From: Anolis carolinensis
Lineage: Eukaryota
Assembly: GCF_035594765.1 (NCBI RefSeq)
Contig: NC_085846.1
Location: forward strand, 119,027,190 to 119,091,189
Direction: 5' to 3'
DNA length: 64,000 nucleotides
Numbering within the stretch: the stretch's first letter is position 1; each line of letters opens with the position of its first letter. The position numbers and the translations under genes were made by a program. A model generated the notes under the pieces. That model was given only the letters and a program-made list of their open reading frames with translations. It did not search any database and was not told where the DNA came from. Positions 24,733-63,840 of this stretch are shown in pieces.

Positions 24733-24870
24733 CAAGCATGGGCCAACTTGGGCCCTCCAGGTGTTTTGGACTTCAACTCCCACCATTCCTAACAGCCGGT
24801 AGGCTGTTAGGAATGGTGGGAGTTGAAGTCCAAAACACCTAGAGGGAGGGCCCAAGTTTGCCCATGCCTG
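24733..24870. mobile_element. Palindromic hAT MITE; duplicate at 52663-52796
   Basis: TIRs caagcatgggc / gcccatgcctg; TSD TTATAGCC. Confidence 0.82.
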
Positions 24871-26034: not shown

Positions 26035-26520
26035 CCTGGGCTGTAGCACAGCTGGTTAATCACCAGCAGAAATAGATCACTGCTGACCGGAAGGTGGCAA
26101 GTTCGAAGCCTGATTTGGATTGAGCACCCAACTACCAATAGCCTAGCTTGCTGTCCACCTAAGCAGTTCGAAAACAGCTGAGCTGTGAGTAAATAAATTA
26201 GGGACAGCTTAAGCAGGGAGATTAACTTAATTTATAACAAGATAAAACTGCCAGCGATCAAAGAGCGATAAGGAAACACTGTGCTCAAAATGGACTCGGT
26301 GTCATAGTAGATGAAGCGACAGTTCCCCCTGTGGCCGGAATCGAGCATAACCTCCATAAGCCAAAGTTGGAAAATGTTGAATTACCTCTATCTGTCTGTA
26401 TGTGTAGTATGTCTAAAAACGGCATTGAATGTTTGCCGTGTATATGTGCATTGTGATCCACCCTGTGTCCCCTTTGAGGTGAGAAAGAAGGGCAGAATAT
26501 AAATACTGTAAATAAATAAA
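26035..26520 (+). mobile_element. tRNA-derived SINE with (AAAT)n tail; duplicate at ~53972-54457, relative at ~4015-4245
   Basis: gggctgtagcacagctggt box A-like and gttcgaagcc box B-like motifs; shared 3' tail. Confidence 0.6.
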
Positions 26521-26737
26521 TTCCTGCTGGAATGCAACAAGGTTCTAGACAAGAAGAATGCAAGAGTGGCTCACAGTAGCAGTGGGAAAATAGGAGATAG
26601 TATTTAGCTTTTTAGAGTAAGCTGAACCTCTTCTTTCTTATGGAAAACTGTCCAGCTCCTCTCTGAGACGGAGACGGATATCTTGACCCAACTCCTTCTC
26701 ATTCCGCTCCTGTTCTTGACTTTCCCTCACAACCTCC

Positions 26738-27710
26738 TGTAATGAAGTGTGGTTTTTTTTAGTTTACAGATGCCATGTTTAATTGTGTTTTAAAAGGGTT
26801 AATATTTCAGTTACTCTGCACTCATGAGTTGGTTCCCATGGAGAAGTGGGAGGAGCCAACCATTCTTTTGCTGGAGGAGTGTAGTTTTGAAAAAGCAGCC
26901 GTTAGTCTATGCCCTGAGGAGGTGCAGTTAAGACTGATCCTCAGTGAAGGGATCAGGGAGGCTCAAATGTTTGATTTTGAGTCAGTTTAAAATATGTTTG
27001 GTGACTTATTTTAAGTTAGTCTGTGCCCTGCTGAGGTACAGTTAAGACTGATTCTCAGTTGGAGGATCAGGGAGGCTCAAATGTTTGATTTTGAGTCAGT
27101 GTAAAATAAGTTTGGTGACTTATTTTAAGGTAATCTGTCTCTTGATAAGCAACAGACAGTCTGTGATTTAAATTCATAGGGTGATTGCAGTTTAAAGCAC
27201 TAGAGAAGGAAGTGACGTTTTAAGAAGTTTGAAACACCTCAATATAGCTTTGCAACTGTTAATCTAAGTGCCTCTAAAGAGAAGTTACTGTAACCATTAA
27301 GCTTGTGCCTGAATAAATGTGTTATTGTTCTTCCTAACATCTCAGCTTCTGTCATCTATATTACCATCAAAAAGAAAACAAGAAAGAAGAAAAATAAAAT
27401 TTAAAAAGTCTCCTCTCTAAGTAACTAGTAGCTATATCTTCCAATAGTGGTGGCAAGAGTTGATAATCCCCTTAACATCTGGTGGCAGCATTTAAATAAA
27501 AAACATCTTTAATAAGTGGTGGCAGTGGATATAAAATATATATTAATAATATAAATAAAATATAATTAATAAAACAACCTCCACATCCACATCTCCGAAA
27601 TTGGTGTCAGAGTTGGGATTTAAAAAAGAGTCCCCCTGCCTGAGTTCTCCTCAAATTGGTGGCAGTGGTGGGATTTTAAAAAGATTTCCCCTCTGCCTGA
27701 CATCTTTGCA
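26738..27710 (+). mobile_element. Solo LTR-like element (probably Gmr1-like Gypsy) in the GIMAP C1 intron
   Basis: TG..CA termini, 5-bp TSD CCTCC, AATAAA, internal ~110-bp duplication, several tggtggcag/tggtgtcag PBS-like motifs. Confidence 0.75.
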
Positions 27711-28660
27711 CCTCCTTTGGATGTAGGCAGACTAGAACAGGACCCAGTAAACATTCCTTCCAGACAATGGAGTTCTCGCAATAAAGATTACCATAGTTCT
27801 CTAATGAAAGTGTGCTTTGCCCCTTTAATGCCCATCTCACACCCACACAATTGCCAAATCTATTCGCTTGGCTAACAGATCCTTAAGAATCTGAGAACTA
27901 TTTTATGATGATGGGGGGTGTCAACATGAGCAGTTTTCCCATCTGTAGGTTAATTCCTACAAAACCACGGAAACACAGAATACTGGGGCCTCCGTGGCCA
28001 AGCCTGCTCACTTCTGGATTCAGGGGACTATTCCACCGCAATGAATCCATGCAATGCAACCTCAAGACTGGACTGTGGGAATGTATGGCTTGTGGCCCTC
28101 AGCCAGCAGTCACTCAAGCGCTTAGTAGAATCCCTATCTCTGCTGGTGTTTTAGGGATCTCCTGGGACAAGGGCAGGGGGTCGCTCTTGACTGACAAGGG
28201 CCTGTTCTGAACTGGGCCAGATTATCTGAGAGTCTGCCATCTCCAAGATGCAGTGTTCCTTCACTTATCCCGGGTGTTACGTTCCAGGACCACCCGCAAT
28301 AAATGAAAATCCACGAAGTAGGGACGCTGTATTTGTGTTGTTTACAATCTCACTGGATTCTTGGCCAGGAATGCAATAAAATGCCTCTGCTCTATGTCTT
28401 CACTTCACTGGTGAGTTTTTAATCTGGAAATGTGGTTTTAAATTATGGTTCCCTCCCATTTCATTGCAGTCTAAATTGTGCAATTTTATTCACTGAGATT
28501 CTATGGGGCCCAATATTGCACATTCCTGTCATCATATGGCATTTTTAGTTTTCCCATGCAAAGGTTGTTAACCTTATCTGTTACTCACCCCACTATCCTT
28601 TTTTATAAACTGCTATGCATTGGTCTTGTTTTTCTGCACCTTATTCAGAAGCCCAAGCAA

Positions 28661-28707
28661 GGAGGAGGAGGAGGAGGAGGAGGAGGAGGAGGAGGAGGAG
28701 GAGGAGG
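28661..28707. repeat. (GGA)n microsatellite adjoining a splice donor; duplicate at 56598-56644
   Basis: Read directly. Other simple repeats: (TC)/(TA) 1045-1107, (TTA) 4938-4985, (TTC) ~23805-23860, (TAA) 60289-60343. Confidence 0.9.
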
Positions 28708-29255
28708 CTTACCTTGGCTGACTCTGGACATTTTTGAAACTCCCATGAAGGACAAAGATCCAGGGAAATTCCTGTGCAAAGAAACACACACAGAAGTGAA
28801 AGACATAGAATCATAGACTCCTATGGACGAGACCTCATGGGCCATCCAGAAGCAGAAAAGTCTTATTCAAAGCATGATGGCCCCAGACAGATGGCCATCC
28901 AGCCTTGATCCTGTGAGTCTCCCTCTTCCTCTGGACACATTCAGGCTTAGAGTCAACCTCTCCCTTCAATTGCGGTGCCCAGAATGGGACACAAGAGTGT
29001 GATTCCAGGTAAGGTGGTCTGGTGAAGGTCTGGCATACTGAGAAGAGACATTCTCGAAGGATAGAATACAGACTAATAAATATGATTGCGCTGGAAAAGA
29101 AAGCACAGAGAAGAGAAGGCTGTTGTCTCAATCTGCCAAGGCAGTTAGAGAAGCAGGGAGGTTTCTCATCAAAGGAGCTTGAAAGAACTTCCGTGAAGGC
29201 TCACATTCTCTTCCTCTCTGCCTACTAAAACCAATTAGGAAAAGACAGATATATA

Positions 29256-29662
29256 CCCTGTTTCCCCTAAAATAAAACTTCCCCTGAAAATAAGACCTAG
29301 TAGAGGTTTTGCTGAATTGCTAAATATAAGGCCTCCCCCAAAAGTAAGACCTAGCAAAGTTTTTGTTGGGAAGCATGCCTGCCAAACAGAACACCAGAGC
29401 ATGCAGGATCGGTAAATGTACGTGCCATAGAGTGTTGTACATGGAAATATTGGTAGTAACAAGAAATTCTTGATAGGATTCACAGTATGTCTGGTTATGC
29501 TGGTTTATGATGACAACTACTGTACAGTATATAATAAATGTTCATTTTTTTGTTCAACAATAAATGCGAATTCTTCTTCATGGAAAAATAAGACATCCCC
29601 TGAAAATAAGACCTAGAGCAAAAAATAATATAAGACACTGTCTTATTTTCGGGGAAACATGG
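29256..29662. mobile_element. pogo/Tigger-like MITE; duplicate at 57193-57599
   Basis: Inverted homolog of 2011-2431; TIR ccctgtttcccc / ggggaaacatgg; TA flanks. Confidence 0.8.
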
Positions 29663-29937
29663 TAGGTAAAAGATCCTCTTTACAAAGAGTTGTATTTACT
29701 TTCATTCCAATTTCTTATCTGGAAATTATCACAGGTCGTGTGATGGCCTCAGTTGCCCTTGGTTGGAAGGACCAAAAGAAATGGGATATAAAAAGTTGGT
29801 ATATTAAATATCTCCCTGACTACCTAGTCCAAGACTATATTAGTGAAACGTTATGATAGGATGGGCCAAAAGACAAAATGGGAGGCAAAATGGAAGGGTC
29901 TCATTTCCGGAAGAAAGGGGAAAGATAAATATAAGGA

Positions 29938-30098
29938 ACGAGCGAAACCCGGCCACGTTTTGCTGTGGCGTTTTTGGTTTGCATTTTTTTCTGCATAAAC
30001 ATTAAGATCTGACGGGTTACCGACTCTGGAGCATGCGACGTATAATTGCCCATGAGAGAAGCATTTGTTTTCTAATTTCAACACACACACTTGCATCT
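29938..30098 (-). mobile_element. Helitron 3' fragment (PIF1-type helicase C-terminus plus terminal hairpin); duplicate at 57875-58035
   Basis: FSHGQLYVACSRV helicase motif, then the gccacagcaaaacgtggcc hairpin. Confidence 0.78.
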
Positions 30099-30569
30099 TC
30101 AGGGGTTTCATAGAATCATAGAGTCGGAGGAGATCTCATGGGCCATCCAGTCCAACCCCTTTCTGCCAAGAAGCAGGAAAATCTCATTCAAAGCTCCATC
30201 TCCCCAAAGGGACTTGGGGTGGCTCAGATGGGGTCAAGCCCTAAAACATCAGATTGATGTACAATTTAAAACAGAATTAACAGACTACAACAATTATTTT
30301 AAACCATTAAAATAAACACAACCATATCAATTAGAATGTGAAGTGGAATTATTCAGGTTGCAGGGAGGGGCAGGCTGTGCAGCCGTGAAAATAAGACCAT
30401 AGGCTTGGTGAATGAGAACACGAGTAGTCACCCGTGTTCCCAGGACTGGTGCCTAGCACACTGCCCAGACGCACCGTGAACAGAGCTGGCTTGGAGCCCC
30501 ATCATCTTGGCAGCGTCCTAGGACGGGGCTTAAACCTCATGTGACGAGGCCCTTTCAGGCCTTTCTGCC

Positions 30570-30775
30570 AGGTTTGAATCCCACACGGGGAGAGTGCAGA
30601 TGAGCTCCCTCTGTCAGCTCCAGCTCCATGCGGGGACATGAGAGAAGCCTCCCACAAGGATGGTAAAACATCAAAACACCCGGGCGTCCCCTGGGCAACA
30701 TCCTTGCAGACGGCCAATTCTCTCACTCCAGAAGCGACTTGCAGTTTCTCAAGTCGCTCCTGACACGGGGGAAAA
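30570..30775 (+). mobile_element. 5'-truncated Sauria SINE; duplicate at ~58507-58712
   Basis: Homologous to the body of 58962-59235. Confidence 0.75.
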
Positions 30776-31648
30776 ATGAAGTTATTATGAATGGGAAATG
30801 TCTGCAACGCATCCCTCACCTTGATGCTCTAGTTAGGGGTTCATTTTCACTTAATTTTATTCATTTATTTGTTTTATGTTTATATACCACTCTTTCCCCC
30901 CAGCCGGGGAACCCAGAGTGGTCTTACACAATGGCAACATTAAATGCCACATATGATACAACATGTAGTAAAAACCAACAATCGTAGAACACACTTAAAA
31001 ACCAATATCATACCCTTAAGGGTAGGAGCCTCCGGTGGCGTAATGGCGTCATCATGTGCGTCCATTGTGACATCGAAGGTAATGAGCCAAGAAGGTGAGC
31101 TCTTGCAGAAAAGGTGCCTGTTCATTAACAATGGGCACAAACAATGGGCACGAGGACATGTACTGATGGAACCTCGCCTTTTGCACTTTTGACCACTTGT
31201 GCTGGACACTAACTTAGAAATGCCTCCAAGGGTGTCATGCATTGCTTTACCTATAAACGTAAATGTAACTGAAGCATTGGGTGTCCCATTCCTTTTTTTT
31301 TTTTTTTGGCACCCATGAGTTCCTGTTTTTCTGGGTTTTTTTAAACTTATTTTTCAAAAATAAATATTTCTTGAGACCCCAAAAGGCCTGATTCTTGCCA
31401 GCTAGGTTTTAAAACTGCACCTTTTGAAAGATTGAAGTGACACTATCACTGACAAAACTTCCCTGCCACCTGAATGGGAAGAGCCAAAGGCAAGGAAGAA
31501 TAACACATACAGGCAAGACACATCTTTTAGGGAGCTGTACAAGTTCTTTAGTTCACCACTTAGACAGATGTTGCTGATACACATGGGGGTTTTCCCCTTT
31601 CTCCCTTGCAGTGTAAGCATTAAAAAAGCACCACTAGGAAAAAGAAAA

Positions 31649-42462: not shown

Positions 42463-44937
42463 CTAGGAGCAGTCGGTCTCAAAATCCAAATCTGGGAAAT
42501 TCAACACAGGAAGGTTGGCCTTCAGGAAAACAAGTTTCTCAACTGTTTGAGGGTCCAGCAAGCTGCGGTGGGGCGTGACCACATCTCCCGCTAGGCTGAA
42601 GACCCTTTCGCTCTGGACGCTGGTGGGAGGACAGCTGAGGAACTGGCGGGCTACGTGCGACAGATCCGGCCACATGTGTTCACGTGAAGCCCAATAGGAC
42701 AATGGATCACAAGAAATTATCTCAGGAGGCTCCTCAAAGTATCTGTTGACCGAGCATTCGGCCGAGTCTACCTTTTGAGCAGAAGCCAGCAAAGAGGATT
42801 CTTCAGAGCAGGCAAGTATGGCCACCGTCTCTGCAAAGAAAACGTTTCCTGTTCGCGGCTGGAGATCCGTATCCCTACGGCAACCCCCTACCGGCTCCCC
42901 GGGACTTTCAGTCTCGCCACTAGCGCTAGTGCTGGGGGTGACAGGCATTTCTGGAAGAGGGGCCGCTGTGCCCGTTTCCTCCACCCTGGCAGCAAAGACC
43001 TCCCTCACAAGGTCAACAAGTTGGGCCTTCCACACGGTAAAGTCTTTTGGGCAGACGTTGTACTTTAGCCGTGGATCACACAAGGCCGCCAGCATATGGA
43101 CCTTGCTGGAAAGAAGTGGCTCTAGGCGTTTCCGTACAGCAAAGGACAACCTCCTCACCACCTCCTGGACCGGCGGTGTCAGCGGTCCAGCCAGGGAGTC
43201 CAGTGTTCGACCGGCCCCAAGCCTTTCTAGGTGCCTCCTTAGCCTCAAGACCATGGGCACTGCCTGGCTCAGAAGGGCTTTTGATTCCGAAAGGGTCTCA
43301 GTGGCATGTTTGAATGGCTTTAGTACGTCTACTAGCTGGGAGATGGTGTCCCACTCTTGCTTAGTTGGAACAAGCTTGCTAACAGGCGCAGCCAAAGTGA
43401 GGGAGATGCCGTGTACTGCCTTCTGCTGCTCGACCATGCGTTCGAGCATTTTTAAGGTTGAATTCCACCGAGTCGAGACGTCCTGGAGCAGCTTGTGCTG
43501 CGGGAGGCCTTCAAGGCTCTGCCTGTCTCTCAGCTGCCGGGCTGCCTTGATGCTCCTGTGGAAGTAGCCCGCGATCTTTCTACAGCGCTCGATCAGCAGG
43601 GAGATGTTTGTGTTGCTGGCCGACTGCTCTTCCTGGCTCTTTAAACCTTCCTTGACGGTATTGTGAAGCAAGTGGGCCATGCAGGACACATTCTGAAACC
43701 CGGCACTTTCAACCGCTTTGATCATATTTTTACCAGCGTCCGTCACCATAAAGCCCCTCCTCATTTCTTCCGGCCTACACTGCATCCATTCCCCCATCAT
43801 GTTTTCCAGATAGTTGCAGATGGTCTCTGCCTTGTGATCACGATCAACTACCTCCAATGCGAGGAGTGCCCAACGATGGGATGTATCCATAGTGCCTTCC
43901 TTCTCCCACCAATGTGCCGTGAGAGAGAGGTAGGAGTGGCCTCCTCCCAAGCTTGACCAAATATCAGAGGTAAAATGGATGTGTCCTCCCATGGCGGTAC
44001 ACAACATCTGGATAATGCGTTCCTTACAGCCCTCATACAATCCGGGAATAACTTTTCTGGAAAAGGTGTGACGGGAGGGGATTTTGTATCGGGGGCACAG
44101 TCGTTTCATAAGGCGTACGAAGCCTTCTTGTTCTACCAGGCGGAAGGGATGGTGATCTAGGGCAATCATCTCTCCCACAGTTTGTGTTATCTGCTGGGGT
44201 GTGAGTAATGTTTCCCCCGTTTTCTTTCTGGGTAATGGAATGGCCCAATCCTCCAAGGTGGACTGTGTCCGCCTTCCACCATCTTCACCAGGAGAACTTT
44301 GCGTGCTAAGGCTGCCACTGGAAGGGCTTGCAGTTCCCCCTCCTAGCGAAATGGAGGGATGGTGTCGCTTCATGTGAGAGCTCAACCCCGAGGTCGCAAG
44401 ATGTCTCGTGTCTCTGCCTCTGCTGATATTTGCCCCACAGTGTCTACAAACTGCCAAAGTAGCACTCTGAGAGTGCACATGGAAATGGTCCCAAATAAAT
44501 GACCTTGGCCTCCCCACAGCCACTGTGGCGACGCCCTCAGAGATGGGAGTCGTGGGCACCCTTTCAGCAGCATGAGAAAGTCTACGTTTTGATGGTAGTA
44601 CCTCCTCTACCTCCTCCTCACTGTCAGTAGCGGGTGGAGGGGTGGGGTTATCTATATCCTCATCCACCACCTGTAGTTCCATGACGGCAACACCTGTATG
44701 TTCCATTGATCGTCCAGTTGTCTCAGCTCCATACGACAACCGGCTCCGGGTGGATGCCTGTGAACTTTCTGCATTCGAACAGCCAGCTTCTTCATCAAGT
44801 CCACCCACTCCCATAGTTCGGCGTTCCAGACGGATGGGACCCACCTTAACTTTTTTGGCCCCCCACAGTGTCCTGGCTGTGGCTTGACCACTAGCAGGAC
44901 TTGCTCCCCCAGACCCGCGTACAGCTGAGCGCTTCAT
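42463..44937 (-). CDS. hAT transposase, 824 aa, ZBED4/ZBED6-like (BED finger, DDE core, hATC dimerisation domain)
   Basis: IWDHF..CRHC..HMKRHH BED finger; SDIWS, VTD, CMAH, TRWNS; YW..WPDL..PPTSVQSERVFS. Uninterrupted ATG-to-TAG ORF. Confidence 0.95.
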   Translation of the reverse strand: MKRSAVRGSGGASPASGQATARTLWGAKKVKVGPIRLERRTMGVGGLDEEAGCSNAESSQASTRSRLSYGAETTGRSMEHTGVAVMELQVVDEDIDNPTPPPATDSEEEVEEVLPSKRRLSHAAERVPTTPISEGVATVAVGRPRSFIWDHFHVHSQSATLAVCRHCGANISRGRDTRHLATSGLSSHMKRHHPSISLGGGTASPSSGSLSTQSSPGEDGGRRTQSTLEDWAIPLPRKKTGETLLTPQQITQTVGEMIALDHHPFRLVEQEGFVRLMKRLCPRYKIPSRHTFSRKVIPGLYEGCKERIIQMLCTAMGGHIHFTSDIWSSLGGGHSYLSLTAHWWEKEGTMDTSHRWALLALEVVDRDHKAETICNYLENMMGEWMQCRPEEMRRGFMVTDAGKNMIKAVESAGFQNVSCMAHLLHNTVKEGLKSQEEQSASNTNISLLIERCRKIAGYFHRSIKAARQLRDRQSLEGLPQHKLLQDVSTRWNSTLKMLERMVEQQKAVHGISLTLAAPVSKLVPTKQEWDTISQLVDVLKPFKHATETLSESKALLSQAVPMVLRLRRHLERLGAGRTLDSLAGPLTPPVQEVVRRLSFAVRKRLEPLLSSKVHMLAALCDPRLKYNVCPKDFTVWKAQLVDLVREVFAARVEETGTAAPLPEMPVTPSTSASGETESPGEPVGGCRRDTDLQPRTGNVFFAETVAILACSEESSLLASAQKVDSAECSVNRYFEEPPEIISCDPLSYWASREHMWPDLSHVARQFLSCPPTSVQSERVFSLAGDVVTPHRSLLDPQTVEKLVFLKANLPVLNFPDLDFETDCS

Positions 44938-48057: not shown

Positions 48058-48431
48058 NNNNNNNNNNNNNNNNNNNNNNNNNNNNNNNNNNNNNNNNNNN
48101 NNNNNNNNNNNNNNNNNNNNNNNNNNNNNNNNNNNNNNNNNNNNNNNNNNNNNNNNNNNNNNNNNNNNNNNNNNNNNNNNNNNNNNNNNNNNNNNNNNNN
48201 NNNNNNNNNNNNNNNNNNNNNNNNNNNNNNNNNNNNNNNNNNNNNNNNNNNNNNNNNNNNNNNNNNNNNNNNNNNNNNNNNNNNNNNNNNNNNNNNNNNN
48301 NNNNNNNNNNNNNNNNNNNNNNNNNNNNNNNNNNNNNNNNNNNNNNNNNNNNNNNNNNNNNNNNNNNNNNNNNNNNNNNNNNNNNNNNNNNNNNNNNNNN
48401 NNNNNNNNNNNNNNNNNNNNNNNNNNNNNNN
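48058..48431. other. Assembly gap (N run)
   Basis: Continuous n characters. Confidence 1.
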
Positions 48432-49070: not shown

Positions 49071-52000
49071 CATTTCAGACATTCCTATCCATCATGACCT
49101 CCGTTCTCTCTTGGTCTTTCTGACCATGGGATTACCCAGTTTTATTTATTTATTTATTTATTTATTTGTTTATTTACTGCTATTTTATCCCACCTTTCTC
49201 AACCTCAGAGGGGACTCAAGGTGGCTTCACAATATAGGCAATGCCTTTGAAAACATAGTACAATTAAAATAACCGTACCATTAAAACAATTTAAGTATTT
49301 AAATCCAAACAACAAGTTAAAATCATGTAATCCATAGGTATAGTCCAGGACCGTTCCATAGGTCAGTTACACATCTTTCGTATTATTGCACTAGATTTTC
49401 AAAGGCTTGGTCAAAGAGCCTTTTACCCAACTTCTGCTGAATAACACATTCCAGGAGAACATGGTCACTCCCACCTAAGGAACCCACTATATCCACCTCA
49501 TTCACTCTTGGTTAGAATCAGATTTGAAACAAATGATCTCCCTTGTTGCCTCCTCTACCTTCTGGACCAGAAATAGTCTGCAAGGCCATTTGTTGGACCT
49601 GATGCTCTTGGCAGTTTGTCTTCCAACAAACTTCAGGATAGTTAAAAGTCTCCCATTAGTATGACATCTCTCCTCTCTGGATGTGTGATCATCTCTTCTC
49701 AGAAGGCATCATCCAGGTTCTCAGTACTCTTTATTCCACTTTTTCAGCTGCTTTAAAAATATCCCAGTTTCTCTCTTCCTTCTTTGTACTTGTCCTTAGC
49801 TGACTTCAGTTCGAAGCACAAAATAAATGTGTCCTTAGGAGAGGGAAGAGGAGAGAAGGAGCAGAGATCCTGCCCTCCGCATTCATCTCCAGCGCCCTCT
49901 CCCAGCTTGCCTCTCCTTCCCCTGTAATAACTGGTGAGATGCTGGCAGGTATAAAAAGGTGAGGCCTATATGACTCTACAAGCAAGTGTTGGTCTTAATG
50001 ACAAAATGCATGGAGATTGACAGGGAATCCAATGCGGTGTTGTGGGTTGACTCTGGAGACCGGGGTTCGAACACCCACTTGGCCACTGACAGCCACTGGA
50101 TTGCCTTGGGCCAGTCACACTCAGGCCTTAGATCAGTGGTTCTCAACCTGTGGGTCCCCAGATGTTTTTGGCCTTCAACTCCCAGAATCCATAACAGCTG
50201 GTAAACAGGCTGGGATTTCTGGAAGTTGTAGGCCAAAAACATCTGGGGCCCCCAGGTTGAGGACCACTGCCTTAGAGGAAAGCCAACCTCCCCTGAAGAA
50301 ATCTTGCCTTGAAAACCTTGTGAAAGCTTCACCTTTAAGTCACCATATGTTGGAAATGACTTGAAGGGACACAAGAACCACAAACATGATGAGTTAAAAC
50401 AACACAAAGTGAAGTGTAAGGTTATTTTTAAATGGCTTGAAATGAAATTCTAGATAATGTTGTGATAAATGAGTTGGGGGTGTTTTTGGTTTTGCAGAAT
50501 GTGCTCCAGCACCAGAAAGAAGCAAACAGGATGCCTCGATTGTGGTGGAACGTTTCTGAATTCATGTGAACAGAAACAGGCCTGCAGAAAACCCCAGAGC
50601 GTTACTAGTTGGTCTGTGGTTGAACTGAGCTCAGGTGCTCTTTCCTTGCAATAATCATCCTCTGAGCTTTGCAGCTGAATACAAACCAAACAGGCAGTTT
50701 CCTTTGATGTTATTTCACTTTATTTGGCCACTTTCTCTCTAGAGGATTCAGCAGTACTACATGTGAAAAGAGCCGTGGGGTTATTATTACAGCTCATTGA
50801 ACATGGGCCAGCAGTGTGTTGCTGCAACAAAGATGGCAAAGGCTTGTGCTTGGAAGAAGATTAGTTTCCAAGTCTATGCTTCTAAGTTGAGGGAAGCTAT
50901 AGTCACTCTACAGTCTGTGCTAGTCTCCCGGCCTCCTCCCGTTGTCCATTCAGTTCAGGGCACCTCATTTTGGGAAGGATACGGACAAGTCCAAGCAAGT
51001 TTGGAGAATGGCAATGAGGACGAGAACACAACACAAGGAGAGGAGCTAGGCATTTTCCACCCTGTGACACAATGGCCCTCTAGTTCGGCCCCAGAAGCTA
51101 GGATCAGGCCTCGTGGATTGAAACCACAGGGGGGGGGGGTAGATTCTGATTGAACATTAGGAGGAAGTCCTTGACAATGGAAGAGATTGGCCACAGAGTC
51201 ACTGGTTCTGTCTGTCTCTCTGCCTCTGTCTGTGTGTGTGTATATCTGTCTGTCTGTTCACCCCCCTCTCTCCCTCTCCCCCCCCCAAGTCCCCTGGTCT
51301 CGAAAAAGAGGCTAGACTGCTCCCTGCAGTTGAGGATCTTGCAACTGGGGATCCTGGATTGAGCCACTAAAAGGAAATCCATGGCCAAGAGCGCTGCAAC
51401 GCACTGCCTTCCGGAGCGACTAAATAACCTAAAGGCGCCAGTCCCATTTGAGCTTGGTTGGTACTTGGATGGGAGACCAGGTCTGTAAGAAGGAGGCTGC
51501 AAACCCTCTGAGGATTCCTGGCTTGAAGGCAAGTACATAGAAACAAACATGTGCATCACCTTTTAACATCCTCATTCCTCCTTATTCAAACCAGGTGGCA
51601 ACAGACAGCATGCCTATCTGAACCCTCTTCCTAAATATGGAGGGCGTTCAACCTGCACAAGCAAGTTCTGTTTTTCATCTCAACTGCTTGCTTGACTACT
51701 ACTTCTTCTACCTCTTCTACCTCTTCTACCTCCTCCTCTTCTTCTTCTTCTTCTTCTTCTTCTTCTTCTTCTTCTTCTTCTTCTTCTTCTATTTATACCC
51801 CACTTTATCTCCCCAAGGGGGACTCAAAGCAGCTTGACATAGAAGCATTAGTATACAATTTAAAATATACAAATATACAAATATTAAAACAGCATTACAC
51901 ATAATTAGTATTAAAACAATTCAGATTAAATCCATAGAAACACATAAAACCACAGCAACCCCTGACATGATCTTGAACGCTTCCATCTTCTTCAGCTGTC

Positions 52001-53073
52001 TGAATTTAAGATACAAGTGAAGACCTATCTCTTTGTCAGGCCTTCTGAGAAGGAAGGAAGGGCCTGTTCTCTCTCGTTCCCACCAACCGAGCCTGAGGTG
52101 GAGGTGGGACCGAGAGTAGGAAGGCCTCTCCTGAAGGGGATCTCAGGGCTCGGAAGGCAGGTTCATACAAGGACATGTGGTCGGTGAAATAGCCTGGACC
52201 TGAACCATCTAGGGCTTTAAAGGTCATCACCAGCACTTTGTATTGTGCCCAGAAACAGACTGGCAGTCCTGCAGTCGGCCCCAGTGAGCAACCTGGCTGC
52301 AACTCTTTGGACCAGATGAAGTTGTGGAGCGCTTTTCCGAGGAAGCATCACGTACAGCACGTTATAGTCATCCAGGTGGGATGTATCTATAGTCTTTTAA
52401 AATCATACTCACAGCCATAATTATCCTACAAAAGCCAGAAATGATCTTCACCTGAGTCGCCTGATAAGTGAAGCCACAGCAAACAAGGGAAATGGCTGCA
52501 AACAGCAGAACACAAGCGATACGCAAAATGAATCAGCAACAAGAATGAAAAGAATAATGGTGATATGCTTATCTTAGAATGAGAATATGGAAGAAGACCC
52601 ACAATGCCTTTGTGAGTGAATCAATCCCCAAAACTCATACTCCAAATGATATGATTATAGCCCAAGCATGGGCCAACTTGGGCCCTCCAGGTGTTTTGGA
52701 CTTCAACTCCCACCATTCCTAACAGCCGGTAGGCTGTTAGGAATGGTGGGAGTTGAAGTCCAAAACACCTGGAGGGCCCAAGTTTGCCCATGCCTGTTAT
52801 ATCAATGTGTTGCCGCCACTGTTGTTCTTATTGCAACTAAGGTTGCATTGTAGAATTAATGCCGTTTTGTACTTCTTTGATTGCTTTTGCTCAACGCTAT
52901 GGAATCCTGGGAGCTGTAGTTCTATAAGGTCTTCAACCTTCTCTGCAAAAGAGTGCAGGCGCCTCACCAAACCACAACTCCCAAGATTCCATAGAACTGA
53001 GTCATGGTCGTCAAAGGGGTGTCAAACTGCATTAATTTTACAGCGCAGATGTACCCTATGAGAAACAACAAGC

Positions 53074-56000
53074 TTAGAAAGAGCCTGAGCTGTTTACTGA
53101 GTTGTTTTGGAAAGAAGATAATGTATGTTGATTACCTTTCGCCAAATGAATGATTAGTACAACCAAGCCAATGGCGAAAGCACAAACACCAAAAGTAAAC
53201 AGCCCTTTTTTCAGCCACGGTCTTCCCAAATTCCAACCTCCCCTTGGCTTTGGCCTGGTACCTCCATTCTCTGCCATGAACGCTCGAATCTTTTCATCTG
53301 TCAAGACCGGCTCCAAGTAGAGCCTATTGGAGAGATGCCTCCCTCCCTCCTCCACCACCATTCGCTGGACTATCTCCATCAACTCAGAGACCTGCCTCTC
53401 CCGTTCCTCCCCAGATGCCCTGTTATTGAAAGCACACATGCGCCGCCCACACTTCCGAATTAGCCCCTGGAGAGCCTTATTATCTGAGCCCCACACATAG
53501 TTTTCCAAGGAATCCCCCCCTAAATCCTCCTTGCGGGTGAAGAGGATGACCATGTGCCTGGAGGCCCATTCCCCAAACACAACCCGGACTTGATTTGCTG
53601 CATCCTGGTCTTCTGCCGTGAAGCGGCCCACCTGGGTCACAAACACCAAGGCATGAGGGCCGGGCCTGGAGAGGTCAATGCAGCGCCTGATCTCCGGCAG
53701 CAGGATCGTACTGGGTGTGTCTGGGTCACAAAGGGCTGGAGTGTCGATCACAGAAAGGTCCAAGTCTCTCCACCTCTGTGTCTCTCGTTGGCACCTGAGC
53801 GTGGTCGTCCTCAGTGCCGCCACGGACTCAAACGCCTTCCGGCCAAGAAGGGTGTTTCCTGTAGCGCTCTTCCCGCCTCCGGTCTTTCCAACAAGGACAA
53901 TCCTGAGTTCAGATTCCTCCCTTCCGGGGCCTGAAGAACAAATCAGTGAAAAAAGAGTCAGAGTTGATCTTCCTGGGCTGTAGCACAGCTGGTTAATCAC
54001 CAGCAGAAATAGATCACTGCTGACCGGAAGGTGGCAAGTTCGAAGCCTGATTTGGATTGAGCACCCAACTACCAATAGCCTAGCTTGCTGTCCACCTAAG
54101 CAGTTCGAAAACAGCTGAGCTGTGAGTAAATAAATTAGGGACAGCTTAAGCAGGGAGATTAACTTAATTTATAACAAGATAAAACTGCCAGCGATCAAAG
54201 AGCGATAAGGAAACACTGTGCTCAAAATGGACTCGGTGTCATAGTAGATGAAGCGACAGTTCCCCCTGTGGCCGGAATCGAGCATAACCTCCATAAGCCA
54301 AAGTTGGAAAATGTTGAATTACCTCTATCTGTCTGTATGTGTAGTATGTCTAAAAACGGCATTCAATGTTTGCTGTGTATATGTGCATTGTGATCCACCC
54401 TGTGTCCCCTTTGAGGTGAGAAAGAAGGGCAGAATATAAATACTGTAAATAAATAAATTCCTGCTGGAATGCAACAAGGTTCTAGACAAGAAGAATGCAA
54501 GAGTGGCTCACAGTAGCAGTGGGAAAATAGGAGATAGTATTTAGCTTTTTAGAGTAAGCTGAACCTCTTCTTTCTTATGGAAAACTGTCCAGCTCCTCTC
54601 TGAGACGGAGACGGATATCTTGACCCAACTCCTTCTCATTCCGCTCCTGTTCTTGACTTTCCCTCACAACCTCCTGTAATGAAGTGTGGTTTTTTTTAGT
54701 TTACAGATGCCATGTTTAATTGTGTTTTAAAAGGGTTAATATTTCAGTTACTCTGCACTCATGAGTTGGTTCCCATGGAGAAGTGGGAGGAGCCAACCAT
54801 TCTTTTGCTGGAGGAGTGTAGTTTTGAAAAAGCAGCCGTTAGTCTATGCCCTGAGGAGGTGCAGTTAAGACTGATCCTCAGTGAAGGGATCAGGGAGGCT
54901 CAAATGTTTGATTTTGAGTCAGTTTAAAATATGTTTGGTGACTTATTTTAAGTTAGTCTGTGCCCTGCTGAGGTACAGTTAAGACTGATTCTCAGTTGGA
55001 GGATCAGGGAGGCTCAAATGTTTGATTTTGAGTCAGTGTAAAATAACTTTTGTGACTTATTTTAAGGTAATCTGTCTCTTGATAAGCAACAGACAGTCTG
55101 TGATTGAAATTCACAGGGTGATTGCAGTTTAAAGCAGTAGAGTAGGAAGTGACATTTTAAGAAGTTTGAAACACCTCAATATAGCTTTGCAACTGTTAAT
55201 CTAAGTGCCTCTAAAGAGAAGTTACTGTAACCATTAAGCTTGTGCCTGAATAAACGTGTTATTGTTCTTCCTAACATCTCAGCTTCTGTCATCTATATTA
55301 CCATCAAAAAGAAAACAAGAAAGAAGAAAAATAAAATTTAAAAAGTCTCCTCTCTAAGTAGCTAGTAGCTATATCTTCCAATAGTGGTGGCAAGAGTTGA
55401 TAATCCCCTTAACATCTGGTGGCAGCATTTAAATAAAAAACATCTTTAATAAGTGGTGGCAGTGGATATAAAATATATAATAATAATATAAATAAAATAT
55501 AATTAATAAAACAACCTCCACATCCACATCTCCGAAATTGGTGTCAGAGTTGGGATTTAAAAAAGAGTCCCCCTGCCTGAGTTCTCCTCAAATTGGTGGC
55601 AGTGGTGGGATTTTAAAAAGATTTCCCCTCTGCCTGACATCTTTGCACCTCCTTTGGATGTAGGCAGACTAGAACAGGACCCAGTAAACATTCCTTCCAG
55701 ACAATGGAGTTCTCGCAATAAAGATTACCGTAGTTCTCTAATGAAAGTGTGCTTTGCCCCTTTAATGCCCATCTCACACCCACACAATTGCCAAATCTAT
55801 TCGCTTGGCTAACAGATCCTTAAGAATCTGAGAACTATTTTATGATGATGGGGGGTGTCAACATGAGCAGTTTTCCCATCTGTAGGTTAATTCCTACAAA
55901 ACCACGGAAACACAGAATACTGGGGCCTCCGTGGCCAAGCCTGCTCACTTCTGGATTCAGGGGACTATTCCACCGCAATGAATCCATGCAATGCAACCTC

Positions 56001-56683
56001 AAGACTGGACTGTGGGAATGTATGGCTTGTGGCCCTCAGCCAGCAGTCACTCAAGCGCTTAGTAGAATCCCTATCTCTGCTGGTGTTTTAGGGATCTCCT
56101 GGGACAAGGGCAGGGGGTCGCTCTTGACTGACAAGGGCCTGTTCTGAACTGGGCCAGATTATCTGAGAGTCTGCCATCTCCAAGATGCAGTGTTCCTTCA
56201 CTTATCCCGGGTGTTACGTTCCAGGACCACCCGCAATAAATGAAAATCCACGAAGTAGGGACGCTGTATTTGTGTTGTTTACAATCTCACTGGATTCTTG
56301 GCCAGGAATGCAATAAAATGCCTCTGCTCTATGTCTTCACTTCACTGGTGAGTTTTTAATCTGGAAATGTGGTTTTAAATTATGGTTCCCTCCCATTTCA
56401 TTGCAGTCTAAATTGTGCAATTTTATTCACTGAGATTCTATGGGGCCCAATATTGCACATTCCTGTCATCATATGGCATTTTTAGTTTTCCCATGCAAAG
56501 GTTGTTAACCTTATCTGTTACTCACCCCACTATCCTTTTTTATAAACTGCTATGCATTGGTCTTGTTTTTCTGCACCTTATTCAGAAGCCCAAGCAAGGA
56601 GGAGGAGGAGGAGGAGGAGGAGGAGGAGGAGGAGGAGGAGGAGGCTTACCTTGGCTGACTCTGGACATTTTTGAAACTCCCAT
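53074..56683 (-). CDS. GIMAP family GTPase with C-terminal transmembrane anchor (GIMAP1/5-like, gene C2); CDS join(56683..56650,53930..53074), about 296 aa (291 aa from the second ATG at 56668)
   Basis: G1 [38 protein letters not shown]; hydrophobic tail [21 protein letters not shown]. Exon 56708-56650 (gcacag| ... [12 protein letters not shown]|gtaagc) joins ttcttcag|GC at 53930 in phase 1. Confidence 0.88.
54675..55647 (+). mobile_element. Solo LTR-like element, duplicate copy in the GIMAP C2 intron
   Basis: Same as 26738-27710, TSD CCTCC. Confidence 0.75.
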
Positions 56684-58961
56684 GAAGGACAAAGATCCAG
56701 GGAAATTCCTGTGCAAAGAAACACACACAGAAGTGAAAGACATAGAATCATAGACTCCTATGGACGAGACCTCATGGGCCATCCAGAAGCAGAAAAGTCT
56801 TATTCAAAGCATGATGGCCCCAGACAGATGGCCATCCAGCCTTGATCCTGTGAGTCTCCCTCTTCCTCTGGACACATTCAGGCTTAGAGTCAACCTCTCC
56901 CTTCAATTGCGGTGCCCAGAATGGGACACAAGAGTGTGATTCCAGGTAAGGTGGTCTGGTGAAGGTCTGGCATACTGAGAAGAGACATTCTCGAAGGATA
57001 GAATACAGACTAATAAATATGATTGCGCTGGAAAAGAAAGCACAGAGAAGAGAAGGCTGTTGTCTCAATCTGCCAAGGCAGTTAGAGAAGCAGGGAGGTT
57101 TCTCATCAAAGGAGCTTGAAAGAACTTCCGTGAAGGCTCACATTCTCTTCCTCTCTGCCTACTAAAACCAATTAGGAAAAGACAGATATATACCCTGTTT
57201 CCCCTAAAATAAAACTTCCCCTGAAAATAAGACCTAGTAGAGGTTTTGCTGAATTGCTAAATATAAGGCCTCCCCCAAAAGTAAGACCTAGCAAAGTTTT
57301 TGTTGGGAAGCATGCCCGCCAAACAGAACACCAGAGCATGCAGGATCGGTAAATGTACGTGCCATAGAGTGTTGTACATGGAAATATTGGTAGTAACAAG
57401 AAATTCTTGATAGGATTCACAGTATGTCTGGTTATGCTGGTTTATGATGACAACTACTGTACAGTATATAATAAATGTTCATTTTTTTGTTCAACAATAA
57501 ATGCGAATTCTTCTTCATGGAAAAATAAGACATCCCCTGAAAATAAGACCTAGAGCAAAAAATAATATAAGACACTGTCTTATTTTCGGGGAAACATGGT
57601 AGGTAAAAGATCCTCTTTACAAAGAGTTGTATTTACTTTCATTCCAATTTCTTATCTGGAAATTATCACAGGTCGTGTGATGGCCTCAGTTGCCCTTGGT
57701 TGGAAGGACCAAAAGAAATGGGATATAAAAAGTTGGTATATTAAATATCTCCCTGACTACCTAGTCCAAGACTATATTAGTGAAACGTTATGATAGGATG
57801 GGCCAAAAGACAAAATGGGAGGCAAAATGGAAGGGTCTCATTTCCGGAAGAAAGGGGAAAGATAAATATAAGGAACGAGCGAAACCCGGCCACGTTTTGC
57901 TGTGGCGTTTTTGGTTTGCATTTTTTTCTGCATAAACATTAAGATCTGACGGGTTACCGACTCTGGAGCATGCGACGTATAATTGCCCATGAGAGAAGCA
58001 TTTGTTTTCTAATTTCAACACACACACTTGCATCTTCAGGGGTTTCATAGAATCATAGAGTCGGAGGAGATCTCATGGGCCATCCAGTCCAACCCCTTTC
58101 TGCCAAGAAGCAGGAAAATCTCATTCAAAGCTCCATCTCCCCAAAGGGACTTGGGGTGGCTCAGATGGGGTCAAGCCCTAAAACATCAGATTGATGTACA
58201 ATTTAAAACAGAATTAACAGACTACAACAATTATTTTAAACCATTAAAATAAACACAACCATATCAATTAGAATGTGAAGTGGAATTATTCAGGTTGCAG
58301 GGAGGGGCAGGCTGTGCAGCCGTGAAAATAAGACCATAGGCTTGGTGAATGAGAACACGAGTAGTCACCCGTGTTCCCAGGACTGGTGCCTAGCACACTG
58401 CCCAGACGCACCGTGAACAGAGCTGGCTTGGAGCCCCATCATCTTGGCAGCGTCCTAGGACGGGGCTTAAACCTCATGTGACGAGGCCCTTTCAGGCCTT
58501 TCTGCCAGGTTTGAATCCCACACGGGGAGAGTGCAGATGAGCTCCCTCTGTCAGCTCCAGCTCCATGCGGGGACATGAGAGAAGCCTCCCACAAGGATGG
58601 TAAAACATCAAAACACCCGGGCGTCCCCTGGGCAACATCCTTGCAGACGGCCAATTCTCTCACTCCAGAAGCGACTTGCAGTTTCTCAAGTCGCTCCTGA
58701 CACGGGGGAAAAATGAAGTTATTATGAATGGGAAATGTCTGCAACGCATCCCTCACCTTGATGCTCTAGTTAGGGGTTCATTTTCACTTAATTTTATTCA
58801 TTTATTTGTTTTATATTTATATACCACTCTTTTCCCCCAGCCGGGGAACCCAGAGTGGTCTTACACAATGGCAAAATTAAATGCCACATATGATACAACA
58901 TGTAGTAAAAAACCAACAATCGTAGAACACACTTAAAAACCAATATCATACCCTTAAGGGT

Positions 58962-59235
58962 AGGAGCCTCCGGTGGCGTAATGGGTTAAAGCCTTGTAAC
59001 CTGAAGGTTGGGTTGCTGACCTGAAGGCTGCCAGGTTCAAATCCCACCCGGGGAGAGCGCGGATGAGCTCCCTCTGTCAGCTCCAGCTCCACGCGGGGAC
59101 ATGAGAGAAGCCTCCCACAAAGATGGTAAAAACATCAAAACATCCGGGCAATGTCCCCTGGGCAACGTCCTTGCAGACGGCCAATTCTCTCACTCCAGAA
59201 GCAACTCAAGTTGCTCCTGACATGGAAAAAAAACA
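58962..59235 (+). mobile_element. Sauria SINE-like element, full length
   Basis: tRNA-like head (ggtggcgtaatgg ... ggttcaaatccc), body shared with 30570-30775, A-rich tail, 12-bp TSD ACCCTTAAGGGT. Confidence 0.85.
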
Positions 59236-59356
59236 ACCCTTAAGGGTGGATCCACCCCTAGAATCCTTAGGGCACCCCATAGAGAGCACGCACACCTTTC
59301 AAGAGCCAGGAGGCCTTGGCCGTGAAGCATCAGGAAAGGAAGCAAAGGGTACCTAC

Positions 59357-59754
59357 CTTCTCTGTCCTGCTGCTGCTGGTGCTGCTCCTTCTTGCTCCGG
59401 CTTTTGTTCTCACAGGTTTCGTTCCCACCTCCGGTCTGGAGTCCTGCTGCAAAGGAGGAAAGAGAGCCGAGGGAGGGAGGGCGGAGGGCCACTTCGGATG
59501 GATCCTCCCTCCCTCCTCATTCCTGAAATGACCTGGCAAGCTGTCAGGGACCCTCCAAAGAAGGGTTGGTCCTCAGCCAGGCTCCGGCATTTCCAATGGC
59601 TAAAAAGGAGGTGCCAAGTCAAAACGAAACTCTTCTGAAAGTCTCATGCCTTAGGTCTTGCCGGATGACTGTAGCCAGAGAAGCCTTCAGCTGCAGACAA
59701 GGGTGGCCTGGGCACAGAGAGGCAGAAGGAGCTCCTGGCAGCACAAGACCTCAG
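59357..59754. promoter_or_regulatory. Putative bidirectional promoter between gene C2 (- exon 1 donor aag|GTAGGT at 59356) and gene B (+ exon 1 donor cag|GTGAGT at 59755)
   Basis: IRF-type motifs AAAACGAAACT (59621-59631, +) and GGGAACGAAACC (59415-59426, -); CCAAT at 59593. Shares ggcagaaggagctcctggcagca with exon 1 of gene A. Confidence 0.62.
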
Positions 59755-60288
59755 GTGAGTCTCTGTCTGTCTGCCCATCTGTCTGTTTGGGATGCCTTCC
59801 TTGGAGCAATGCCATCATGCATGCTTTCCTGTTTTAATGGCTGGGGCTTAGCATGTGTGTGCCCAGCCTCTGATTGTCTGAAGTCCACAGCATCTCATAT
59901 TCGATCCTCCCAACTGCTGGCAAAGAAGTAGGGAGCGGTTCCTAAAAATCATGCAGGTTGCAAACTTAAAATTCATCTGGCCCAGGCTGAAGTATGACCT
60001 GCATTGCATTGAAATCTCGGAAACCAGTTTCCTGAAGCATCCTGCAGTCTTAGCATCTAAGCATGCATTCAAAGAGTGGACAGAAAGGAGAATAACATTG
60101 TCTTTCCACATTGTAAAGACTAGCCAACATATTTCAGAATAACCATCCTAGCCATGAAATCATGGGATTTGTAGTTTGCTGAGGCACCAACACTCTTTGG
60201 CAATGAAAGCTAAAGAACTTCTGGTGTCTAACTAAATTAACTCTATATTGTAGATGCAGCTGTAGTTTCAAAGGTGCTACAAGGTCCC

Positions 60289-60345
<57 letters not shown>

Positions 60346-62029
60346 TTTATTTTTATACCCCGCCTCTATCTCCCCGGAGGGGACTCAGGGCGGCTTACAT
60401 GGGGCCAAGCCCGAATAAAAACAGTAGCAGTATAAAACACAGCAATAGACAACAACTTGCACAAAAAAAAAATAATTAAACATTAGCCAATAAAAAACAA
60501 GAACTAATAAAAACATGGATTAAAACTGAGAGATTGTAAAAGTAGACTGGGTAAGGTGCACCATATAAATATTGTAAACACAAGGTGACTGATAAAGTGC
60601 TGCAAATTCTGGAAGTGCAAATTGGGATGGGAATAGACCCTGTGTCAATATCGAGTTGACAAAGGTAAAAGGTGCAAACCGGTACAAGAATGGTCACAGA
60701 TACAGATTGCTTCTGGATGAGCAATCTTTATCTAAAGGCTTGAGTAAAGAGCCAGGTTTTCAAGCTCTTTCTCTTTGCTTCGTAAGGACCATGTGCTTTT
60801 TGCTCCTATCATGGTGAGACCTATCAGAGTGACTCTTAGCACAGTAGACGTTGACATTGATCTATGAAGAGCTTGAACATGGCCGCTGAATTAAGAAGTC
60901 ATGGGGTTTCTGGGGTTGCATCGCATCTAGTTTGGGCTACTGAGGTTTGGGATGTGAACTTCCACAGCAATTGATCTTGGTCTGTAATGAAGGAAGGCAG
61001 AGTTTTCAAAAAGTTTTGGTTAGACAGGAGGGAAACACGACTGATCTGTGTGGACATTACTATGGATCCAGAGCAAAGCACGCTTGGACACACTTAAGAG
61101 TAATTTCTAGTTTGAAGATAGGTGGGAGTAGTGGAAATTGGGTAGAGAGATGGAGCTACAATTGAGTTCCTTGCAGCTCAAACCACAAAAACGGGAAACA
61201 GGACACTTTAAGGGTCTCTTGGGGAAGTTGCCTGGAAGGTGCAACAAAAGAGTCTCAGATCTATAAAAACAGAACCTGGCCCTTGATTGGCAGTCTCATT
61301 AAAAGCAAGCGGTGTGGAGATTCACCTTCTTCCCACTAAAAGCGTTCTTTTCTCTTCTCACGTGCCCATGCATTTCAGCCAACTTGGTCTTCTGGGGACC
61401 CTAGAAAGGAGAGACCTCCAAGTCACCCACCTTGAGAAGCCAGTGTTCTCTGCCTTAGAAAGGAACCGGTAGCTTTGCACAGGACAGGGGTGATCTGGGC
61501 CTCAAGGGAAGTTACTTTTCTGTTGTGGCCAATGGAAGCGAGATCTTCTGATCTGTCTTTGGTTGCCTCCAGAGAAACTGAACTATGGCAGAATGAACAC
61601 CTGCTACAAAATGATTCCACCCTCTGGCTCGATTTCACTAATATTGAGCACAGCTGTTCTCAAAGAGAAATTCTGCACCTGGAACATACTGGAAGGAGTT
61701 CTTCCTCTGCAGGCTCGAAGTGTGAGCACCCCGAACATGTCATGCCCTTCCTTTGGATCCTCTCAAAGCCTGAGGCTAAGTGACTTCTAGAAGTGCATGC
61801 GATTTTTTTTTCTAGATGGGGCTTGTAGCTGAACGTGAAGCCAAGCTGCTTCAGCTCTCTCCCATCCCTAGTGTATATAAAATAATCCTGTTTAGCAACA
61901 TTTCCTGATCCACATTTCTCCAGTTATTAGGGCATTCCTTGCTTTAGCTGAGTTCTTGTTTTCTTTCTTTTTGTTTCAGATCTAGAAATCCTGAGCGTTG
62001 GTATTGCTCTTTCTTTAGCTTTTAAGAAT

Positions 62030-63840
62030 ATGGCCGCATTCAGTACAGGTAAGAGTTTAATGAGCTGATTAAATTATACCAAATCAAGCCCATCTTATTG
62101 TTCTAGCAAAAATAATACTGCATATTGCAGAGGATTGCTTTCAGCTGGCACCAAAATTATGGAGGAATTGAACTGTGTTAGACAGATTGCCAACCACTAA
62201 CACCAATATATGGAGGATTCAAACTCGTTACCACTACTAACACTGCCACCAATGTTATAGTCAGGAGCCTCCTCTGTGTTAGGATATTTAGAGAGTCACA
62301 GGAGATACTTTATGTGAGGAAAAAACAAGAAGTCGTGTATTTGTTCTTAAACAGTAAAGATGTGTTGCAGTTTCAATAACAGGTTAGGCTTTTCTCTTAC
62401 AAAGGATGGTTTTATAACTTGAATTCTGTGGAAATATGTTCCTTCACACAGGGAATACAAACAGGATAATTTAAACCTTTAAATCCACTTCTCCTGGGAT
62501 TTAACACCAGCACTCTAAACTATAGAGTCTCAATATAGTTCTCAGCCTTTCTTCCCTGAAGGCTTTTAACTATATTCCTCAAAGAAGTATCTCTCTAATA
62601 ACACAGTTCCCAAAAGTATCTCTATCTTCACACTTCAAACACCAACCATCCAACTTCCGAACTGACTGAATAATTCTTCTGGCTGCATAGCTCCAACTGT
62701 CACTTTGGCTCCGCCCATCTCCAGTTGCTAAGCATCTCTCCCCATTTACATCAGCCAATCAGACTGCACTTTCAGTAATGACTGCCTAATTGCTCCTCCC
62801 CCTTGCTCTGCTTAGCTTTTGCAAGCAAGGCCTGAAGCTACCTGTACACCAACCTTGTAAGGTAGGCTTATCTCTTACACATATCTATTATGTCCTAGGT
62901 ACATTTTAGCTAATTACCGCTCCCTCCCAAGTTTGCCATTCTGGGGCTATTGCACTATTGGTTGGGGAATCTGGAGCATGGCTGGTGGTTCACGGGTGGG
63001 GTTGAAGGGGTGGTGGGAAATGACACTTCTATTGTGATGGTTGAATTTTGTAGATCGTATGCTTTTTTCACATAACATAATAAACATTTAATTACAAAAA
63101 AAAATGAAAACAGCAAAGTTCCCCTTGTATAACAGTTTCTTCTATTGTTGTTCCATTTCCTTGTTTTAGCCCCTGAATTGAGGATCGTCCTCGTGGGAAA
63201 AACTGGAGTTGGGAAAAGTGCCACAGGAAACACCATCCTGGGACAGAAGCTCTTTAAATCTATTGCATCGCCCAGCTCAGTGACAAGTACATGCGGAAGG
63301 GAGGAAACTGTCATCGATGGTAGAAAAATTGTGGTTGTTGATACTCCTGGGTTTTTCGACACCAATTCAACAACCAAAGAAACTATCAAAGAAGTGAAAA
63401 AGTGTGCAAGCCTTTGCAGTCCAGGTCCACATGTGATTATACATGTCATGCAATTGGCTCCTTTCACGAAGGAGGAAAAAGAAGTAGCTAAATTAATCCA
63501 AGATGTTTTTAGCCTTAAAGCAAAGGCTTATGGAATCGTTCTGTTCACCCGTAAAGAGGGTTTGGGAGGAAGGTCTTTGAAAGAGTTCTTAGAGGACGGA
63601 GATGAATCTCTTCGGGAGCATGTGGCCAAATGTGCGGGTGGGTGCCTGGCCTTCAACAACACGGCTGAAGGTCGGGAGAGGGAAGAGCAGGTCAATGAGC
63701 TGCTTGGCATGATAGATGCCTTGGTGAAGAAGAACGACAAGGCCCCTTGCTACACTGAGGACATGCTAGCCAGGGACCAAATCACCATGAGTAAGATCCA
63801 AAATATTTTAAGACGGAACGATTGTTGCAACATACTCTAA
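62030..63840 (+). CDS. GIMAP family GTPase (gene B); CDS join(62030..62048,63170..63840), 229 aa, ends CCNIL
   Basis: G1 [21 protein letters not shown]. Exon 61980-62048 (tttcag| ... ATG GCC GCA TTC AGT ACA G|gtaag) joins ttttag|CC at 63170 in phase 1. Clearly paralogous to gene A in exons and 3' flank. Confidence 0.92.
62277..62878. mobile_element. Probable solo LTR in intron 2 of gene B
   Basis: TGTTAGGATA...TATCTCTTACA inverted termini; no clear TSD found. Confidence 0.4.

Follow-up and report, generated by a model that had tools for sequence, protein, structure and literature searches.

Two GIMAP genes of Anolis carolinensis, C2 on the minus strand and B on the plus strand, are transcribed divergently from a shared promoter carrying an IRF-type motif, which is supported by spliced RNA contigs. 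With a probability of about 0.55 we read this region as a compact bidirectional promoter in a GIMAP cluster evolving by birth and death, which co-expresses two GIMAP classes. The conserved core (IRF-type element, start region, short exon 1 and donor) would belong to the CaaX-class gene, whose partner would be interchangeable. In A. carolinensis the core would also fire backwards into a GIMAP of another class, namely C2 at this copy and a two-domain gene at a second copy to the left. The likely function would be co-expression of GIMAP1/2/5-side and GIMAP4/7-side subunits, both of which would reach membranes and could dimerise via the G interface.

Gene content and the divergent start region

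The window (the whole stretch of 64,000 nucleotides that was analysed) contains four GIMAP (AIG1) coding exons, named A, C1, C2 and B. Spliced gene models were searched one exon at a time, and Pfam matches to PF04548 (AIG1) above the cut-off were obtained for A (E 7e-67), B (E 6e-64) and C2 (E 8e-69). The main exons of A (8307-9031, plus strand; exon 2 at 6516-6582 with ATG at 6564) and B (63170-63840, plus strand; exon 2 at 61980-62048 with ATG at 62030) are identical to the A. carolinensis RefSeq entries XP_062839782.1 and XP_062839783.1, respectively, and exon 2 of B matches the N-terminus of the latter. The main coding exon of C2 (53074-53930, minus strand) has an AIG1 G domain and an intact ORF. 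Its exon 2 (56650-56708, minus strand) has in-frame ATGs at 56683 and 56668, the second being the start used by paralogues. The C2 gene may be unannotated, since no listed protein equals it, the nearest being 87-96% identical. The C1 coding exon (about 25991-25148, minus strand) lies in a copy at 21142-31046 (minus strand) that is 99.1% identical to 49073-58984; C1 has no exon 1, the copied stretch stopping 372 bp before it, and an 11-bp deletion near 25515 shifts its reading frame. A run of N is found at 48058-48431.

Diverging exon-1 donors had been proposed at 59356 (C2, minus strand) and 59755 (B, plus strand), and RNA contigs back both. The contigs are unstranded and come from runs presumed to be RNA, so that they make spliced forms visible, not start sites or levels, and direction was taken from the splice sites. 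The C2 splice joint 56707..59356 with CT..AC ends is present in runs X5 and X9, which come from two different studies, linking 59357 to 56708 over a GT-AG intron. A loose contig end at 56649 in X5 matches the start of the C2 main exon, and the same contig enters this exon, which is thus spliced from exon 2. On the B side, a contig of this one run proceeds from 59754 into B exon 2, the loose end matching that exon.

The non-coding exon 1 of C2 covers 59357-59636 (minus strand), with its joint from X5 and X9 and its extent from X5, where the contig stops at 59636; its 5' end is at least 59636. For B, the observed part of the non-coding exon 1 is 59696-59754 (plus strand), as the X5 contig starts at or after 59696, and the donor at 59755 is conserved in four copies. 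The gap between the 5' ends observed in X5 (59637-59695) is covered in X9 and X6. In X9 a single contig spans 59356-59754, is joined on the left to C2 exon 2 and extends 143 letters past the B donor. By contig extents the 5' ends of C2 and B overlap or lie no more than 59 bp from each other, well inside the 1 kb within which the 5' ends of divergent transcripts lie at a bidirectional promoter. The 400-bp stretch that the sequence-only reading took as the promoter is thus divergent and shared, but it is not intergenic, since the contig extents in X5 and X9 make it mostly the first exons of C2 and B.

Four copies of the promoter core were compared: 59560-59760, 2790-3000, locus L001 of the same A. 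carolinensis cluster, and locus L004 of Sceloporus. The most conserved 20-bp window among them is 59612-59631 (plus strand), which is exactly the same in Anolis and Sceloporus within a region of about 67% identity. It includes an IRF-type element at 59620-59631 in which a single base, the opening one of the first half-site, departs from the IRF-E consensus (p for the segment about 0.02). The 64 kb contain three sites of this kind, two of which lie inside the two promoter segments. The distance from the motif to the plus-strand donor is 129-136 bp in all four copies, and the element lies upstream of B, yet within exon 1 of C2. Several IRF-type motifs had been claimed for the segment; one is conserved, whereas the second look-alike (about 59427, minus strand) is missing in the 2670-2990 paralogue and in A. 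sagrei. A conserved IRF-type element near the start, as in interferon-stimulated gene pairs, suggests an IRF or interferon input to C2 and B and their co-induction.

Comparison of the Anolis core with snake, Elgaria, Podarcis, turtle and alligator DNA gave no profile matches, and local scores were at or slightly above those of shuffled sequences. IRF-like matches in the Podarcis locus L006 were discarded; the sequence is AT-rich and by eye resembles a LINE coding region. A known interferon-responsive bidirectional promoter is that of TAP1/PSMB9, immune genes which diverge from less than 1 kb with an IRF element. C2/B likewise consists of two immune genes within less than 1 kb with an IRF-type element, but C2 and B are paralogues of one family and their layout varies among lizard species. 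The literature searched, as judged mostly by titles and abstracts, contained no account of a bidirectional GIMAP promoter shorter than 1 kb.

Membrane classes and the CaaX-ended clade

C2 had been described as transmembrane-anchored and B as CaaX-type, and both predictions agree with the protein ends, a C-terminal hydrophobic helix and CCNIL, respectively. The predicted transmembrane helix of C2 (53149-53205, minus strand) has a Kyte-Doolittle value of 2.64 over 19 amino acids, precedes a tail of about 24 amino acids and is conserved among paralogues and orthologues, and C2 would be tail-anchored. By this helix and by tree position C2 fits the GIMAP1/2/5 transmembrane class, although it has one helix, unlike the double helix of GIMAP2. 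The best PDB match of C2 is GIMAP2 (E 4e-60), and the closest solved structure to B is GIMAP7. The G1, G2 and G3 motifs are present in alignments to GIMAP2/4/7. The arginine finger is retained in A (R104) and C2, both of which keep G4; A furthermore has a coiled tail and a WCNIL CaaX box. B, with its AIG1 G domain, has Pro104 at the arginine-finger position and Gly137 at the acidic G4 position.

The role of the GIMAP arginine finger was reportedly worked out by Schwefel in 2010 and 2013. GIMAP2 and GIMAP7 form a known heterodimer in which GIMAP7 activates GIMAP2 (PMC8201404, PMC9111091), and the sequence-only reading named this stimulation as background to its proposed heterodimeric system. 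For B and C2 the analogy fails in the expected direction: with P104 and G137, B has neither the arginine finger nor the acidic G4 residue of a GIMAP7-like trans-activator, and judging by these residues it cannot activate C2 as GIMAP7 activates GIMAP2. Because both residues are missing, B may be a passive or damping subunit and not an activator. Human GIMAP6, and to a lesser degree GIMAP7, can be induced by IFN-gamma, and they associate in a regulatory heterocomplex; in GIMAP6-GIMAP7-GABARAPL2 a catalytically silent member damps the active one via the G interface (PMC9111091). By analogy, damping by a silent, IFN-gamma-inducible GIMAP could serve as a model for B, with the difference that the anole proteins would gain membrane access via a predicted prenyl group or transmembrane helix. 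Such a damping role, or decay, would fit B better than activation, while B-C2 interaction and membrane tethering are speculation.

A and B share the CNIL terminus, and a CaaX-type end is found in 69 of the best 120 matches of A. In 54 of 71 single-domain CaaX GIMAPs the X is Leu, which by the general CaaX rules is indicative of geranylgeranylation; B is therefore predicted to be geranylgeranylated. In quick trees the GIMAPs with a CaaX end fall into a single clade (SH-aLRT 99), separate from the mammalian GIMAP4/7/9 rows and with members from lizards, snakes, tuatara, turtles, alligator and duck. The second tree was built without the long-branch rows, which were hamster GIMAP8, mackerel and a hyena domain. 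Each of the four divergent partners falls on the GIMAP1/5 side, and every CaaX domain in the single clade. Multi-domain GIMAPs of fish (two from mackerel, and others) also end in C-x-x-x and fall outside it. Models fusing a GIMAP1/5-side domain with a CaaX-class domain are present in Anolis, Crotalus and duck.

Within the 71 single-domain sequences the acidic G4 position is Asp or Glu in 69 and Gly only in the two B alleles, and the arginine finger is missing in 16. The combination of Gly at G4 and Pro at the arginine position is confined to the two B alleles. The B ORF is intact in both A. carolinensis assemblies, with one difference between them.

Reviews describe mammalian GIMAPs as either transmembrane-anchored or cytosolic, with GIMAP4/6/7/8 being cytosolic and without CaaX (PMC8201404, PMC9111091). 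The anole genes resemble the mammalian cluster in the AIG1 G domain, in clustering and in having a transmembrane class (C2, like GIMAP2) and a soluble class (B, like GIMAP7), but differ in the CaaX box of B and in its missing arginine finger. A description of CaaX or prenylated GIMAPs was not found in the literature searched, mostly at the level of titles and abstracts. Among interferon-linked GTPases, GBP2 and GBP5 carry CaaX boxes. GBP1 is farnesylated (PMC5084822). GBPs are thus similar as GTPases that dimerise, are linked to interferon and end in a CaaX box; they belong to another GTPase family, whereas the anole CaaX box sits on an AIG1/septin-like domain. We regard the CaaX GIMAP clade of reptiles and birds as the most durable novelty of this work.

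The second pair and the layout in other species

The same two exon ends had been noted at 2670 and 2990 around a consensus ISRE. This segment (2670-2990) is a true paralogue, with a predicted minus-strand donor at 2670, a consensus IRF-E at 2861-2872 and a predicted plus-strand donor at 2990. Positions 2581-3070 align to 59260-59850 with a score of 172 (shuffle maximum 42), both donors being retained, and an origin of the second divergent pair by duplication is supported by this likeness. The plus-strand partner is gene A, and the minus-strand GIMAP starts outside the window, at about -847. The left flank was read from the CM069372.1 locus, which is identical to the window across 19 kb, window position 1 being approximately 119,027,190. 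The first exons of the left gene match a RefSeq 'GIMAP8' of 695-696 amino acids, and UniProt has an equally long model. Its product carries acidic repeats at the N-terminus, two G domains and CNIL as its last residues; a transmembrane GIMAP on this strand left of the window is rejected, as the hydrophobic helix is absent from the 695-696 aa product.

The expectation of a minus-strand GIMAP left of the window was therefore correct, but the protein is a two-domain CaaX GIMAP and not a transmembrane one. Since it ends in CNIL without a transmembrane helix, the second pair is CaaX/CaaX, and the predicted repetition of a transmembrane plus CaaX cassette is refuted. Common to both pairs in the trees is a first G domain of the GIMAP1/5 side opposite a CaaX-clade gene. 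A protein of the same build, with two domains and a CNIL end, exists in A. sagrei. When the natural two-domain protein was modelled with AlphaFold2, both domains came out well; because the linker is disordered and the pTM is 0.50, there is no defined domain packing, and an intramolecular G interface is not supported by the model.

Divergent pairs recur in two other species. Corn snake has a transmembrane gene (minus strand) opposite a CaaX gene (plus strand), with start codons 5.1 kb apart. The anguid lizard Elgaria has a multi-domain gene (minus strand) opposite a CaaX gene, and the sampled domain of the former clusters with the left gene of Anolis (SH-aLRT 99). A single consensus ISRE lies between the Elgaria genes, flanked by a minus-strand and a plus-strand donor 363 bp apart; such flanking donors occur at about 2% of random positions (at slightly stricter score cut-offs). 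Homology of the Elgaria and snake promoters to the Anolis core is unproven, since no convincing alignment was obtained.

No divergent pair is found in A. sagrei, where the C2 orthologue and a two-domain gene have a C2-type exon, carrying an acceptor-like site, without an adjacent core. Sceloporus likewise has no divergent pair; its C2-type exon directly adjoins the core, and exon and CaaX gene share one strand. The flank alignment for the polarity of the inversion between Sceloporus and Anolis was not significant. Alligator has a tandem arrangement, and within 10 kb no partner is seen in turtle or Podarcis. At L001 the core stands without a divergent exon, downstream of a transmembrane gene on the same strand, and the locus contains many duplicated and inverted pieces. 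A further paralogous copy at locus L008, known by its coordinates, extends to the locus edge. The divergent layout is thus recurrent but labile.

Explanations of the pairing and implications

A rival reading is that the pairing is an accident of rearrangement, with inversions in a labile cluster setting a transmembrane-class exon against a CaaX promoter. The IRF element would then serve the CaaX gene only, and C2 would ride on reverse firing with no selection for pairing. The core that persists without a divergent exon (L001) or beside a same-orientation exon (Sceloporus), the A. sagrei exon with its acceptor-like site and no neighbouring core, and the numerous duplicated and inverted pieces in L001 all agree with this. 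However, A. carolinensis keeps two paralogous divergent copies, snake and Elgaria again show the two types of pair, with partners of the corresponding clades, and C2 is intact and spliced; we lean against the accident while taking it seriously.

The dedicated module of the sequence-only reading, a repeated transmembrane plus CaaX heterodimer that targets or tethers two membranes, appears improbable to us. It would account for the fact that, among solved structures, C2 is nearest GIMAP2 and B nearest GIMAP7, a known stimulating pair (PMC8201404, PMC9111091), for the transmembrane/CaaX divergent pair of corn snake and for the fusion models in Anolis, Crotalus and duck. It is contradicted by the second pair without a transmembrane member, by B without arginine finger and G4 acid, and by the two-domain model without defined packing (pTM 0.50). 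We give slightly less credence still to B being a decaying paralogue, in which case C2/B would have no joint function even if both are transcribed. The residues unique to the two B alleles among 71, and a longish branch in the tree, point that way; but each of the two assemblies has an unbroken ORF, with one difference between them, the transcript is spliced, G1-G3 and the CaaX box are kept, and finger-less CaaX members are recurrent, as 16 of 71 have no arginine.

The bidirectional promoter with an interchangeable partner is the reading that we retain. A wider proposal, which we make tentatively and think unlikely to hold in full, is that CaaX GIMAPs are a prenylated reptile and bird class without a described mammalian counterpart, for which toxicoferan squamates keep back-to-back GIMAP1/5-side partners on IRF-driven bidirectional promoters, co-induced and forming regulated heterodimers on target membranes like GBPs. 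The CaaX-ended class would add a third way in which GIMAPs are targeted to membranes. With its length of about 60 bp and its two GIMAP classes, the promoter furthermore constitutes a simple natural test of selection for hetero-pairing.

The 9.9-kb repeat and the C2 tail

Two 9.9-kb segments of the window, 21142-31046, which carries C1, and 49073-58984, which carries the transmembrane-anchored gene C2, are 99.1% identical and constitute a candidate duplication, being either a true duplicate or a second haplotype. The mismatches are clustered in the GIMAP exon, within its 3' half, where the majority change the amino acid, whereas 18 differences fall in 5 kb of intron. This distribution suggests gene conversion or selection. 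The C2 tail following the helix (53074-53148) is longer than that of the C2 paralogues, and contains two N-x-S sequons.

First exons and intron 1

An acceptor-like pyrimidine tract with AG is found within the C2-type exon 1 on the minus strand of the window (about 59450-59470 and 2727-2750), as well as at L009 19137. This exon may formerly have served as an internal exon within a 5' UTR. In the Sceloporus locus (L004 7268-7510), the C2-type first exon borders the promoter core in inverted orientation relative to Anolis, and may serve either the CaaX gene or the transmembrane gene downstream as an upstream exon. Intron 1 of both CaaX genes, A and B, holds a 100-bp block (4483-4587 and 61422-61523) that is 80% conserved, a possible enhancer or alternative exon.

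Transposable elements

The Ty3/Gypsy retrotransposon at 15333-20652 is a very recent insertion, as its 1587-aa ORF is uninterrupted and its 306-bp terminal repeats are identical. A hAT transposase ORF with BED finger and dimerisation domain (42463-44937) is flanked by tandem-repeat arrays, and related pieces are present elsewhere in the cluster (L001, L008).

The left gene, fused models and rearranged copies

The two-domain gene starting left of the window (L007 1-2590; protein P0349) has six acidic repeats of approximately 31 aa each, encoded by small tandem exons. It has many RefSeq isoforms, and in the first P-loop of its protein Lys is replaced by Arg.

Domains from the GIMAP1/5 side are fused to a CaaX-ended domain in gene models from duck, pit viper and Anolis (P0149, P0276, P0131, P0137, P0330). 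Some of these may be read-through artefacts, given the precedent of an old model, P0242, in which A and B were fused with a third domain of the CaaX type.

L001, a further locus of the same A. carolinensis cluster, contains a CaaX-type copy with a frameshift, together with A exons that are copied in part or in inverted orientation (1140-1885, 17524-17726, 19847-20176); the GIMAP cluster has been rearranged repeatedly.
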